A stretch of 64,000 nt of DNA from Pocillopora damicornis (GCF_003704095.1 NW_020845831.1:124001-188000), one strand, 5' to 3'. Shown: positions 22,058-63,995, numbered from the stretch's first letter. Program-made: numbers and translations. Notes: generated by a model from the sequence alone, not told the origin.

Positions 22058-25000
22058 TTAGTCATTATGATCCGTTGCAGTTTTTTCTTCATGGTCCTTT
22101 CCCGCCATCATATCGAAATTAACATAATCCTTGGTATCGTAGACTTCTAAATTGACGTGGTTCTGGCCAAAGAAGATACAGATATGAGATTGTTAAAACA
22201 CTCAATCATCTTTGCTAACAATTATATAAAATATCCTTTTCTTTAAATTGTTTTGCTTTCTTCCGAGTAGGGGAGTGCAAAGAGGTAAACAATTTCGCCT
22301 ATCTGCGCCAATTTTGGGTGCTATCTGCCGATCGCGATGCGATGTAATTCTTGTCCAAATAAGGATCATCGTTGCATATAAACCTTTTTTTGCATAAATT
22401 TGCTGCATGTGAATGTATATGTGTTTCCTTTGCTCCACTTTTGTCGTAACTAGATTTAATGTGAAGTTTTCTGTCTCAGCAGTAGTGTTATAGCCGATAA
22501 CAAAGTGTACTGGGAAACCGCCAGGTCTATAGGTCAAACAAAGTTTCCAAATTTGGTTTTAAACAAGAAATCCTACGTGGAAAAAACATCAAAGTACCGA
22601 CCAAGACCGCCCGAGTGCAGATGACTCACAATCTGAATCTTCAGAGAGCCAGATCCGAAATCAGAACAGAAGACTCCGCTAGTACGCAAAAATCACGTAA
22701 TTTCTCTAATTTTCGAACCCACAGAGTTTTGAATTCAATAGAACATACTCTTAAAGTTCCTTTCTTTTTTAACAGAATAATAACAGAGATTTAAACGAGA
22801 ATTAATGAAAGCAATTTGGAAATAAAAAATAAAACGAGGCATAATGAAATATTACGAACAAACCTTTCGGTCATGAAGGAGTTTTTTAACCGCAGAACAA
22901 AGCCACTGGAACGTTGGCCTTTCCTGAGGTTTCTCTTCCCAACACTTAGTCATAATCGAATACCTGAAAACAAAATTATGACACGTATCACATAATCAGC
23001 GCTACAATGTTTGAAAAGAAAGCAGGCAATGTTACACTTCATGGATAAAAATCTTTTGGAAGGCCGGGAACACTAAGTGACAAATGACACATGCCTCGAT
23101 GCCAAACGTCAATTGGATTTAATTGGTTATAGGTCCCAAAAGTGATTTCAGTTGTTAAGGATTCTATAGAAATCGATAAGAATAAGCTCCGGATAATACA
23201 CTTGGAAGTGAAGATCTTAAGGCAAAAAAGACCGCGTAGCTTCTTTTTTTTATTTCTTAGTTTTGTTTTTGTTTTGTTTTATAGAACAGCACTCGAAACC
23301 TTACAATAGGTCTTTATAAATGAGAAGAAATATCTAAGTGCATGTGAGAAACTGTGATCGCGTTGCAAAACTTTTAAAGGGTTGAGTTGAACTACTCACA
23401 GTTCTTTAGAGATGTGGGCTGGCTTAGGCATGCGGTATCCTTTTACTAGTAAACCTGCTATTTCTGATTTCGTTTTCCCAGGATAAGGTGATTCACCTGA
23501 AAAACATAACCAACGTTAAACCGAAGTGTGAACCTCGGAAGAAAAATGTAAAGAAAGATAGAAAGAAAAATAAAAGGGAAAAAACAGAAAAAATGAGAAA
23601 GGTGAAGTTATTACTTCCGTTTGTGCGGAACTACATGACTGTTTTACACCACATTTATTTGAACAGCTGACCAGTGCGCCCGCGTTATTCAATTGGCGAG
23701 AAAACACAATAGTGCGAATAGCGCCCGATTCAAAGTTTAAAATTAATCACCTTTTTGGAATGTTGGAGCCAGTTTTAGCAATTCAACCGTCGCAAAGGTG
23801 TGTACATGAATCGCGGACAAGATTTTTGTGGAGAAAAGGAAAGGCATGATTATTTTTCAAGAGGTAAGACGCTTTTTTGTCGAATAGTTCCTTCGGAACA
23901 CTGCTAGTACGTTCCAGTGAATTTGAAAGTGATGACTGAGGTCATTTGTAATGAGACTAATGTGAAGAACACCGCTCTAAAGCTGAGAACTATGTGAACA
24001 TTAGGCATAAACGACATTTGCTTATTTATGTATTGCTATTTAATCTTACTTTTAGCCAGACAGCATGCTCCTTCTAAGCAATTGATGAGAAATTGTTCTT
24101 CTAGAAAACGTCTCTGATTTTAAAATCACTTTTTCCTACGGGGGAATTATCCCTTTACTTTATTTTTCTTGTGTACCAAGGAACAAAAAGCTTTTATTTT
24201 AACTCAAAATTTATGGTTATAATGATAATGCTGGTGAAAATAACAGTGATAATGTTGATAATAATGCAAATAATAATGATGATGATAGCACATGTATCCA
24301 AGAAAAATTAATATGGACAGGAATTTCAGAAAGTGGCCTCATGAATACTCAGAACCCGTAAGCTACAGTGTTAGTTGGATAAAACAGAATTTGACCTTCT
24401 TTCATTCATGAGAACAGCATATATGAGCTGACCGAAAATTGTGAGTAATAAGCTTCTTGCTAACCTGTAGAACCACTCCCTCTCTATAAAGTATTCCACA
24501 TACCTATGGTGAACACTTCCCACATCACAATGCCGTAAGACCATCTGTAAAAGAAAGACAAAGTGGAAAATTTTACGTTATGAGGTTTATTTGCGTCATT
24601 AACAACCTCTCAGAGGGTCTTTATTACACCATTGATTTGACGAAGTACTTTCAAGGAATATCAAGCTCATACAAAACTTGAGATGATATCTTTGTTTGAA
24701 CAGTTTTTCCAGAGGTCTATCATAGACTTTTTAGTGTTGTTGCCTCGGTTTGGATTTTGCGTAAAGCAGACCTCCATTACCTTTCTTAAACCATCTCTTT
24801 CAAATTGCATGTGTCATGGTCTCTTACAAAGATGTTTAACTGCATGACTCAGTTTTCCAATCTCTCAGATGTTAACTTTTTTCTTATGAAGAACTAAAAC
24901 TTTACTGTAAACTATAATCATGACCTGCTACGTTTTTTAACGTTTCTGACTACTCTTTGGGACCTTATTTTTTTCTTTTTTTTTAATCAGAAAGCGTTTA

Positions 25001-62200: not shown

Positions 62201-63995
62201 TAATCTGAAAATGATAATGAATCACTGAAACGTAATTTCAATGGACTTTCGCTGATTTTTACTCTTGATACTCTATTTTATTACCGAGCTAAAATGAATC
62301 ATCTATTTTTCTAATCATGTTGCCATCCTGAAAGGGTTTTAGTTCTAAAGAATGGTTTACCACTGCACTTCTATGTTACTGTAGTTATATATACCTTTGC
62401 ATTCCCCCCTCGTATTCTCCATATCCTCCATGCATATACATCTTCCGTTCAGTGAACTCAAGTTCCAGACCCCATCGCTTTGGCAGTTCACCTTTAAAAT
62501 ACCATGCTCGTGGACGGCATTGTTAGTACAACTACCTACAACCGGCTCTGAGTTATTTGCTGGAGCAATTGTACGTGGTAAGTACACCAAACCACCATCA
62601 TGAACTGTCTCTGGGCAGAAGTAATATTTAACAGCGACAGAGAAAAGGACAGTACATGAACCCTGGTCATGAAAAGCCAATACGATGTACTTTCCTTTAA
62701 CATTTATACTAAACGTTTGAGACACTCTGATACCAAGGGCTGACGGAGCTGTTTTAGCAATCTTGTCATAAGAAGCATTGTTTGTTAGAGGGTGGGGTTC
62801 CGTTGATTGCCCGGATTGATGTACGTATAAGTCGAGGTACTCTTTGCAATACTTCCCTCCATTGTCAGGATAGGATGAACACTTTAACGTTCGGTACTCA
62901 ATGGTAATGTGGACTGCTTTCACTCCACTGTGGACCTTAATAGAATCACTTCGAAGCCAGTTGTTTGGTTGTGAGTGTCCAACCAGAGAAATATCACAGG
63001 TTGAATAATATGTCTGCTTTACCCACTATTAATCAGTTAAAATAATATATCAGGAGGTTATTAGGTTCTATCCAGTAAGGAAAGAGCTGTTTTCGATTGT
63101 AACCGAAGTACACTGGATTTCATTTATTATAGCACAGTGTTTGGGGGGTTTTAATTGTGAACATTCCATGTTTTAACTTCCAGCTTCATGAAGTAAACCT
63201 ATAGCTAAACGAACCATTTCAAAGGAGAAAACCTTCATGAAAAAATTCTTGTCTATTTTCAAATAATTCAATCTTGAAGGATAGATTAGCTTTAGCATTA
63301 TAAGCAGTTAGCGGAAAAAGGGGCGTAATTTAGAAATGCTTGAAGGAGGTGCCCTGGAAATTTGAACTTAGCCAGCCAATTAAATACTGTCTGGTCATCT
63401 CTTGCTGTCAAAACTTAGTGACCTTTAAGGAGCTTTTCACAAAAATTAGTTGAAATATAAGTGCTTACCCCACTAAGTCCGCCTATTCGCGCCGTCGATG
63501 TTTCCCAGATCCAGTTCTCAGATGGTATTGGCTGTTTTTCTAAAATGACTTTGGAGAACAAACGTCAAAATCAGGTCAATAATGCACTCATAAAAAGTAC
63601 TTCTCAGTGAAAAAAACTGAAAAACTGCATGCCAACCATAATTAGCTCATATCCCAAATTATTGTGATGAAGAATCGATGATGTGAAATAACAAGTAGTA
63701 CTTTAGATAAATAATATCTTTTAAAGATATAACTGAATTGCACATAAGTCTTTAAGTGACTTTAAATCTTATTATCATCATTATTTTATTTTTTGTTTCT
63801 TGTATATGTAAATATTGGTAAATTTCGTAGTATGCTTTAACCTATCGGCTCTTAAACATGCTTCCGTAAAAAAATCTACGCAAATTGATTTACCTCATTA
63901 CTTAATGTCACAAGCAATTATACCGTACCTTGATTCGCTGATGAAAAGGTTATAATCATGGGGAGGGTGAGCATTGCAGTCAACCGGTGATCCAT
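53226..63995 (-). CDS. Receptor tyrosine kinase C (~863 aa): Eph-type ligand-binding domain + Cys-rich + 2 FN3 + TM + RET/FGFR-like kinase
   Basis: Exons 63995-63929 (signal [22 protein letters not shown]), 63548-63469, 63025-62395, 61086-61039, 60501-60139, 59886-59684 and 58556-58493 (second FN3), 58165-58069 (TM), 57825-57752, 57324-57160, 56948-56838, 56709-56522, 56291-56172, 56019-55949, 55489-55449, 54852-54756, 54581-54482, 53297-53226. The frame is open throughout. Confidence 0.92.
58740..59110 (-). mobile_element. Possible 3' tail of a non-LTR retrotransposon
   Basis: On the minus strand a T/G-rich tract ends in AATAAA followed by an A-run (plus strand tttttttttaa...ttttattttatt). 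No recognisable ORF. Confidence 0.3.
61589..62194 (+). other. Unexplained 201-codon ORF antisense within RTK-C intron 3
   Basis: Third-longest ORF in the track and the only one over 150 aa that is not an RTK exon. GTG start, no recognised domain. Confidence 0.3.

Follow-up and report, generated by a model that had tools for sequence, protein, structure and literature searches.

The 64,000-nucleotide (nt) window analyzed here, from contig C2466 of the coral Pocillopora damicornis (C2466:124001-188000), contains three intact genes, A, B, and C, which encode hybrid receptor tyrosine kinases (RTKs), all lie on the minus strand, and have colinear sets of motifs. The genes are real and expressed hybrids, with the RNA evidence coming from gene B. 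We consider it very probable that their products are single-pass chimeric RTKs assembled by shuffling, with 5′ exons of the Eph type and, inward of the membrane, a cassette of the type known from FGFR, PDGFR, VEGFR, and RET, which are together referred to as the FPVR subgroup (Yeung et al. 2021; PMC8662651), and we propose that such receptors could couple ephrin recognition to adaptor signaling. An earlier note on this DNA, made from the sequence alone, had described a domain-shuffled RTK class with an Eph-like sensor and a RET/FGFR-like interior, expanded in tandem. The data below support this interpretation, with the signaling output as a prediction. All positions are those within the window unless a contig is named.

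Gene models and transcripts

The gene models were obtained by protein-to-genome spliced alignment with an aligner written for this analysis. Single exons or public proteins served as database queries, while the joined models entered only the local alignments, the cutting of domains, and the trees. The model check showed that every intron of genes A, B, and C is GT-AG and that each model has one terminal stop. The motifs quoted in the earlier note for all three genes were all found on the minus strand, and the gene limits coincide with the interval 22058-63995. Gene A (53226-63995, minus strand) is complete, with 18 exons encoding 872 aa, and its layout from the N to the C terminus consists of a signal peptide, the ligand-binding domain (LBD), the cysteine-rich domain (CRD), a short EGF-like exon, two FN3 modules, the transmembrane (TM) segment, the juxtamembrane (JM) region, the kinase, and the tail. 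Its exons are 63995-63929, 63548-63469, 63025-62395, 61086-61039, 60501-60139, 59886-59684, 58556-58489, 58188-58069, 57825-57752, 57324-57160, 56948-56838, 56709-56522, 56291-56172, 56019-55949, 55489-55449, 54852-54756, 54581-54482, and 53297-53226, of which the JM exon 57825-57752 was picked by homology to gene B alone. Gene B (34637-45496, minus strand) is also complete and has one FN3 module, 17 exons, and 807 aa; the exons are 45496-45430, 45128-45049, 43269-42636, 42080-42033, 41574-41212, 40624-40528, 40264-40209, 39916-39803, 39426-39262, 39078-38968, 38849-38662, 38331-38212, 37961-37891, 37226-37186, 35781-35685, 35508-35409, and 34708-34637. Its ortholog is the P. verrucosa protein named “ephrin type-A receptor 3 isoform X2” (P0209), to which it is identical at 755 of 767 residues. 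Gene C (22058-32313, minus strand), likewise complete and with one FN3 module, has 15 exons and 793 aa, with a single fused exon in place of exons 1 and 2 of the other two genes. The exons are 32313-32161, 31559-30902, 30546-30499, 30378-30019, 28273-28177, about 27762-27695 (JM; its donor is provisional, as there are several in-frame choices), 27317-27153, 27012-26902, 26763-26576, 25768-25649, 25175-25105, 24544-24504, 23496-23400, 22963-22864, and 22162-22058.

RNA-library contigs from four studies were aligned to positions 37500-43400 of the window. The alignments showed GT-AG joints (CT..AC on the plus strand) at 10 of 10 predicted gene B introns between 43269 and 37891, which span the region from the LBD exon to the exon following the HRD-DFG exon. 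Contigs X1 (1475 nt) and X12 (1320 nt) run in frame from the LBD exon through the EGF, FN3, TM, JM1, and JM2 exons into kinase exon 1, while further contigs chain kinase exons 1 to 5. Additionally, the Logan contig P0001 (1911 nt) contains in one piece the starting methionine, the LBD, FN3, and TM regions, and the sequence up to kinase exon 2. Hence, the ectodomain and kinase exons are not on separate transcripts, an outcome that the earlier note had named as contrary to its proposal, but are joined in RNA across ten gene B introns and in P0001. The RefSeq isoform P0209 from P. verrucosa omits the 120-nt in-frame HRD-DFG exon (the equivalent of 38212-38331), and a receptor translated from it would be catalytically dead. 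No joint skipping this exon was found among the four RNA runs for gene B, all of which include the exon.

Ectodomain, kinase, and tail of the hybrid receptors

The extracellular part was compared with Pfam profiles using cut-offs of 27 bits for Ephrin_lbd (PF01404), 27 bits for Ephrin_CRD, and 25 bits for fn3. In each gene a single minus-strand exon encodes the LBD together with the sushi-like CRD, at 62395-63025 in gene A (Ephrin_lbd 57.3 bits, Ephrin_CRD 29.5 bits), 42636-43269 in gene B (57.5 and 32.9 bits), and 30902-31559 in gene C (61.1 and 30.1 bits). The Eph ligand-binding pattern and the sushi-like region recognized in the earlier note correspond to these matches, which at 57-61 and 30-33 bits lie above the cut-offs. 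When the LBD/CRD exon of gene B was compared with the PDB, 16 of 16 matches were Eph ectodomains (EphB2, EphA4, EphA2, and EphB3), and the LBD alignment showed that the cysteines and core motifs of this domain are kept in the hybrids. The order and phases (1, 0, 1, 1) of the 5′ exons are those of canonical Eph genes in the same genome, and the exon sizes and phases also match Nematostella Eph genes. With canonical Ephs (EphA/EphB, and in P. damicornis the SAM-containing C3332 and C1425a) the hybrids share the signal peptide, Ephrin_lbd, Ephrin_CRD, an EGF-like exon, FN3, and a single TM segment, and the first 5′ exons agree in order and phase. They differ from these receptors in the EGF-like exon, which is 48 nt long in the hybrids versus 153 nt in canonical Eph genes, and in having a single FN3 module in genes B and C. 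The Pfam search with the 48-nt exon gave no match.

The shortened EGF-like region reported for all three genes corresponds to this exon. The FN3 region was recovered with fn3 scores above the cut-off, but the number of modules varies, as there are two in gene A and one each in genes B and C. In gene A the modules lie at 58489-60501 (minus strand), with FN3-1 encoded by exon 60501-60139 and FN3-2 by exons 59886-59684 and 58556-58489 (Pfam fn3 33 and 30.5 bits), and FN3-2 aligns with residues 398-490 of the Montipora protein P0015. Candidate FN3-2 exons in genes B and C, proposed by the P0015-guided alignment, were rejected, and the models guided by P0209 and gene B were preferred. The TM exon of gene B (40528-40624, minus strand), as read from its translation, encodes a hydrophobic segment that extends from [11 protein letters not shown] to FFACYIIY and precedes the basic sequence NRWNRQRN, and RNA joins this exon to the FN3 exon and to the JM exon.

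The kinase domain is encoded by eight minus-strand exons in each gene, at 54482-57324 in gene A, where it is colinear to positions 3-254 of the PK_Tyr profile, at 35409-39426 in gene B, including the D-E insert exon 38849-38662 and the HRD-DFG exon 38331-38212, and at 22864-27317 in gene C, with exon sizes and phases as in the other two. These sizes are 165, 111, 188, 120, 71, 41, 97, and 100 nt, with phases 1, 1, 0, 0, 2, 1, 2, and 0. All three proteins retain an intact catalytic set (VAVK lysine, alphaC glutamate, HRDLAARN, and DFG), in agreement with what had been noted earlier for these residues. The window kinases contain a D-E insert of 15 residues, while the alignment showed none in the canonical Ephs C3332 and C1425a; the D-E region reads [28 protein letters not shown] in the hybrids, as compared with LKDHEG-KLTPLQLI in these canonical Ephs. 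The Eph and EGFR families have been described as RTKs without a D-E insert (Yeung et al. 2021; PMC8662651).

Comparisons with known kinases pointed in the same direction. The best PDB match of the D-E exon of gene B was RET (43.7 bits), followed by CSF1R, FGFR1, TIE2, and KIT, and the best 60 matches included no Eph. The phmmer search of the PDB with P0015 gave RET at 262-264 bits, TIE2 and FGFR3 at 249 bits, and FGFR1 and FGFR2 at 245 bits, again with no Eph among the best 60. The RET-like character and the kinase insert proposed in the earlier note are borne out by the 15-residue insert and by RET as the best PDB match. Among 5.8 billion proteins searched, the best kinases outside the family were coral Ig-type RTKs with 52-55% identity, as compared with 39% for a canonical octocoral Eph.

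The intron structure of the kinase region was compared with that of the P. verrucosa gene named RET (P0259, locus L049), which has kinase exons of 277, 111, 191, 123, 71, 41, 97, and 100 nt with the same phases as genes A-C. In a common alignment eight of eight intron positions and phases coincide with those of P0259, whereas in the comparison with the canonical Ephs C3332 and C1425a none is exact, three are within 1-2 residues, and four on each side are unmatched. The exon sizes may also resemble those of the human FGFR/RET kinases (111, 191, 123, 71, 138, and 106 or 100 nt). The features in common with FPVR kinases and with cnidarian RTKs named FGFR-, Ret-, Tie-, and Cad96Ca-like comprise the kinase sequence, the long D-E insert, and the eight intron positions and phases. 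Unlike FPVR receptors, the hybrids have an Eph-type ectodomain rather than Ig, cadherin, or SEA modules, and their activation loop is short, with one tyrosine or none. RET proper is characterized by a cadherin-like ectodomain with a cysteine-rich domain and by the use of GDNF/GFRalpha co-receptors; the hybrids differ from it in their ectodomain, which is of the Eph type.

The regions flanking the kinase also differ from those of canonical Ephs. The juxtamembrane motif YxDPxxYEDP is absent from every hybrid compared, while bilaterian Ephs and P. damicornis C1425a (YIDPSNYEDP) have it and C3332 retains only YVDP. The full-length Montipora family member P0015 (878 aa) has neither SAM nor EphA2_TM (PF14575), both of which are present in canonical Ephs. 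The open reading frames of genes A, B, and C end 25-35 residues past the kinase, with the termini ...TKNKE, ...MMDEE, and ...TDHND, in which, by our own reading of the ends, there appears to be no PDZ-binding motif. Hence, the hybrids lack YxDPxxYEDP, the Eph kinase with its short D-E region, SAM, and apparently a C-terminal PDZ motif, which agrees with the earlier statement that the interior is not Eph, as does the position of the kinase outside the Eph clade. The tail exon of gene B (34637-34708, minus strand) has two YxN motifs and encodes [23 protein letters not shown] up to the stop codon. The tail of genes B and C, K-T/N-Y/H-V-N-L-E-V-Y ... D-Y-[VI]-N-F-D, is that of cnidarian RTKs named FGFR-, Ret-, Tie-, and Cad96Ca-like, so that a tail exon of the form K-T-Y-V-N-L ... 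Y-x-N is common to the hybrids and to the cnidarian FPVR-like radiation.

The kinase phylogeny was built from 47 kinases in IQ-TREE with the LG+C20 model. The canonical Eph kinases formed a clade of their own (100/99), including both P. damicornis genes and those of an octocoral, a hemichordate, a bee, Ciona, and a gar. The kinases of genes A, B, and C fell in a 13-row clade of corals and anemones (hexacorals; 100/97), whose sister group (98/90) consisted of cnidarian RTKs listed by NCBI as FGFR-, RET-, Tie-, and Cad96Ca-like. In the approximately unbiased (AU) test a single clade of the kinases of all LBD-bearing receptors was rejected with a log-likelihood difference (delta lnL) of 106 and p about 1e-80. 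A kinase nested within the Eph clade, which had been set beforehand as the result that would speak against the proposal, was therefore not observed, as the two kinds form separate clades. Together, similarity, gene structure, and phylogeny place the window kinases outside the Eph type and probably with the FPVR type.

Proposed signaling and alternative explanations

The cassette inward of the membrane consists of the eight-exon kinase and a short tail exon, with YxN tyrosines in genes B and C, as in cnidarian FPVR-type receptors. A membrane-bound ephrin or ephrin-like ligand on an adjacent cell would bind the LBD and cluster the receptors, and the clustered kinases would then phosphorylate each other in trans. 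Grb2 SH2 domains prefer pYxN, and phosphorylated YxN tyrosines of the tail could recruit SH2 adaptors of the Grb2 type. The output would then be generic RTK/Ras-MAPK signaling in place of the Eph-specific juxtamembrane, SAM, and PDZ signaling. P. damicornis has at least 10 ephrin-domain exons above the Pfam cut-off; with two canonical Ephs and at least seven hybrid genes, the majority of its ephrin-receptor ectodomains would be connected to a non-Eph kinase.

Several observations weigh against this proposal. The LBD is linked to the kinase end by a chain of overlapping spliced contigs together with P0001, no single RNA contig spans the whole distance, and the RNA alignment covers gene B only. 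The arginine of the R-x-C motif, which we take to be the ephrin-contacting residue of bilaterian Ephs, is missing from the LBDs of genes A, B, and C; it is also missing from both canonical Ephs of P. damicornis, and thus its loss is not specific to the hybrids. Gene B has a histidine (within 38212-38331) at the site of the single activation-loop tyrosine of genes A and C, which, along with its glycine loop GSGNFS instead of GSGNFG (39262-39426), suggests altered regulation in this paralog. The short tyrosine-containing tail described earlier for all three genes is present, but the gene A tail, with YEGD and YIHL, does not have the YxN motifs retained by genes B and C. In the kinase tree the hexacoral clade lies beside the sampled cnidarian FGFR/RET/Tie radiation and is not nested in it, and this tree, built without curated bilaterian FGFR, RET, PDGFR, and Tie sequences, shows a sister grouping to cnidarian RTKs; the designation “closest to RET” is taken from the PDB scores alone. 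Finally, ephrin binding has been shown for no cnidarian Eph (PMC10084454), and the ligand binding, kinase activity, and adaptor docking of the hybrids are only predicted.

The genes could alternatively be true Eph paralogs with a fast-evolving kinase that lost SAM without any swap, which is in effect the reading of Krishnan et al. (2019). The Eph-type ectodomain fits such an origin, as do three of the eight kinase introns, which lie within 1-2 residues of canonical Eph introns. The kinase motifs VCKISDFGL and [10 protein letters not shown] also resemble Eph. Yet this explanation, which is contradicted by the kinase tree and the AU test, has to be regarded as highly improbable: the identity to coral FPVR-like kinases is 52-55% as opposed to 39% to Eph, all eight introns are exactly those of the RET-named RTK while four have no Eph counterpart, none of the D-E insert, tail exon, and juxtamembrane region is of the Eph type, and the identity of a Nematostella hybrid to a canonical Eph falls abruptly at about residue 480, just ahead of a phase-0 intron. 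We give practically no credence to an artifact of annotation or assembly, in which an ectodomain-only Eph-like gene would stand beside a separate kinase gene without co-transcription. Some public models are indeed partial, and no kinase was found downstream of the LBD in two further genes of this genome, C1425b and C1425c; against this stand the in-frame RNA contigs from several studies that connect the LBD to kinase exon 1, those that chain kinase exons 1 to 5, the single 1911-nt contig P0001 from the start codon to kinase exon 2, and a layout that is repeated three times in the window and was seen in nine genera.

A different question is what the LBD recognizes, as the architecture could be real and the ligands not ephrins but markers of self and non-self, microbes, or symbionts. 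The LBD is less conserved among genes A, B, and C than the kinase (identity 40-51% versus 77-84%) and has a higher dN/dS (0.4-0.5 versus 0.14-0.20), the tandem arrays include a decayed copy and reshuffled modules, and the ephrin-contact arginine is variable, all of which would suit such ligands. On the other hand, the whole-domain dN/dS is well under 1, the cysteines and core motifs of the LBD are retained, at least 10 ephrin exons exist in the coral alongside only two canonical Ephs, which themselves do not have the contact arginine, and the ectodomain of a Nematostella hybrid is 85-90% identical to that of a canonical Eph. We therefore regard non-ephrin ligands as unlikely, though worth keeping in mind. 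The whole-domain dN/dS gave no sign of positive selection on the LBD, which evolves faster than the kinase, and for this reason the term “hypervariable” would be too strong for it.

Origin, distribution, and meaning of the hybrid class

The P. damicornis genome contains 12 LBD exons above the Pfam cut-off. Two of them belong to the canonical Eph genes C3332 and C1425a, both of which score higher against a hemichordate Eph and extend into the SAM region. The array on contig C2466 extends past the window, with LBD exons at 208k, 223k, and 232k, and consists of at least six genes, A, B, C, D, E, and F, of which D is interrupted by gaps in the assembly and F is cut by the contig end; the tandem expansion reported from the three genes in the window is thus confirmed and larger. 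Within the array the synonymous distances of the two modules are discordant. For genes A and E dS is 0.28 in the LBD and 1.13 in the kinase, while for genes A and B it is 0.83 and 0.42, meaning that A and E have a young shared LBD and old kinases and A and B the reverse. The LBD and kinase trees disagree in the same direction, which, together with the dS values, argues that the modules were re-paired or converted within the array. In the LBD tree the backbone was unresolved and did not place the origin of the hybrid LBD among cnidarian LBDs, while the grouping of C1130 with C1425a and the groups within the array were supported.

Of another LBD/CRD exon, located between genes A and B (49176-49466, minus strand), only the decayed 3′ half remains, with 71% identity to residues 159-255 of P0209 in tblastn and three in-frame stops; no further exons of a gene were found around it. 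Beside this remnant, at 48733-49130 on the minus strand, there are open frames with a Cys-rich stretch (around CVPVCHSY) and no Pfam match, which may stem from the insertion of a mobile element adjacent to the dead copy.

The sea anemone Nematostella provides a pair of genes in which one ectodomain occurs with two interiors. Over roughly the first 480 residues the hybrid P0189 is 85-90% identical to the canonical Eph P0283, a protein with SAM and YIDPSNYGDP, and from there on the two are dissimilar. Their first six exons are alike in size and phase (67/73, 65/65, 676/673, 156/156, 297/330, and 209/209 nt), and the shared exons run to a phase-0 intron at residue 502 (loci L050 and L051), past which one gene has exons of 188, 120, and 71 nt and the other of 99, 120, 150, 45, 152, and 241 nt. 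Recombination within an intron would leave such a pattern of shared 5′ exons followed by complete divergence. In Nematostella the canonical Ephs and the hybrids occupy separate tandem arrays, the former with small F5_F8_type_C genes interspersed.

Another kind of hybrid was found on contig C1130 of P. damicornis, where C1130a and C1130b occupy C1130:59000-72000 on the plus strand and 91000-105300 on the minus strand (loci L033, L042, L034, and L043). Their LBD is sister to that of the canonical Eph C1425a (100/98), while their kinase is sister to the RET-named P. verrucosa P0259 (100/99), and a joint clade of C2466-type and C1130 hybrid kinases, a group named post hoc from the tree, was rejected by the AU test (p-AU 2e-4). 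To judge from these groupings, the C1130 genes look like a second, separate, and younger fusion of an Eph ectodomain to a RET-like kinase. The P. meandrina ortholog of these genes (P0269) retains an Ephrin_rec_like domain. The LBDs of two further genes, C1425b (C1425:48500-68500, minus strand) and C1425c (C1425:77000-97000, plus strand), group as a pair (100/99). Kinase exons were not found for either gene within a distance of 20 kb, and the two may encode kinase-less Eph-like proteins or be longer than the stretch read.

RefSeq models of the hybrid class were found in nine genera, Montipora, Acropora, Porites, Oculina, Stylophora, Pocillopora, Exaiptasia, Actinia, and Nematostella, and no octocoral or medusozoan members were present among the 120 best kinase matches. 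A search with the Nematostella LBD, subject to word and length limits, returned four proteins. We infer that the class arose by exon shuffling, through recombination within introns, in the common ancestor of stony corals and sea anemones at the latest, and it probably multiplied in tandem arrays after the fusion, with its ectodomain and kinase modules re-paired since. The old hexacoral-wide fusion, the younger C1130 fusion, and the Nematostella pair could then be seen as cases of a broader process, in which most ephrin-receptor ectodomains of corals and anemones sit on a portable RET/FGFR-type kinase-plus-tail cassette that was repeatedly re-paired by intron recombination, so that the “invariant” Eph architecture would be a bilaterian impression. 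We lean slightly toward this broader view. Outside cnidarians, the 753-aa protein P0070 of the clam Mercenaria combines an Eph LBD and CRD with a zona pellucida domain and has no kinase, and is, by its domain content, another non-canonical use of the Eph ectodomain.

The domain layout of Ephs is treated in reviews as essentially fixed (PMC6485061; PMC10084454). Krishnan, Degnan and Degnan (2019; PMC6485061) reported two anthozoan-specific “Eph” kinase clades against one cnidarian LBD clade, read this as lineage-specific divergence, and ascribed Eph models without SAM to possible truncation; the text consulted contains no comparison with other RTK families or of exon structure. The proteins in these kinase clades are probably the same as the hybrids described here. 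Repeated recombination of ectodomains and kinases in animals has a precedent in Met-LP, which combines a plexin-type ectodomain with a Met-like kinase (PMC10084454), although the ectodomain, the kinase family, and the taxa (spiralians and deuterostomes) are different, which makes it an analogy only. Full-text searches of the literature, including PMC6993872, PMC6485061, PMC8662651, PMC2405795, and PMC10084454, gave no paper in which an Eph ectodomain is described on an FPVR-type kinase, with subscription journals outside the search. The earlier note, too, knew of no description, and had named an already characterized family as an outcome contrary to its proposal. NCBI names members of the family “ephrin type-A/B receptor”, “Ret-like”, and “angiopoietin-1 receptor-like”, and thus the split naming by automated pipelines that had been anticipated is what the database holds. 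As far as we found, an RTK built from two known families is present in databases under misleading names, and as a chimera it is apparently unrecognized.

Two neighboring exons in the window lie upstream of the array, a trypsin-like protease exon at 406-729 (plus strand, 51 bits) and an exon matching MIIP, the migration and invasion-inhibitory protein, at 18524-18904 (plus strand, 86.6 bits). A matrixin exon lies at 8180-8617 (minus strand; Peptidase_M10, 103 bits).

The hybrid receptors place the Eph sensor on a kinase, a juxtamembrane region, and a docking tail that are all different from those of Ephs, and in this coral the expressed genes encoding them are more numerous than the canonical Ephs. 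Their origin by exon shuffling is recorded independently in phylogeny, intron phases, the insert, and the tail exon, with at least one independent repeat. Counts and trees of cnidarian Ephs that are based on the LBD or on automatic names mix two receptor classes whose outputs would differ, and the entries “ephrin receptor”, “Ret-like”, and “angiopoietin receptor-like” in coral gene lists may all refer to this one hybrid family. The Nematostella pair of a hybrid and a canonical Eph with near-identical ectodomains makes it testable what the Eph-specific intracellular modules contribute as compared with generic RTK output. If the proposed reading is true, corals and anemones would represent a natural kinase-swap experiment on the purpose of Eph-specific intracellular signaling.

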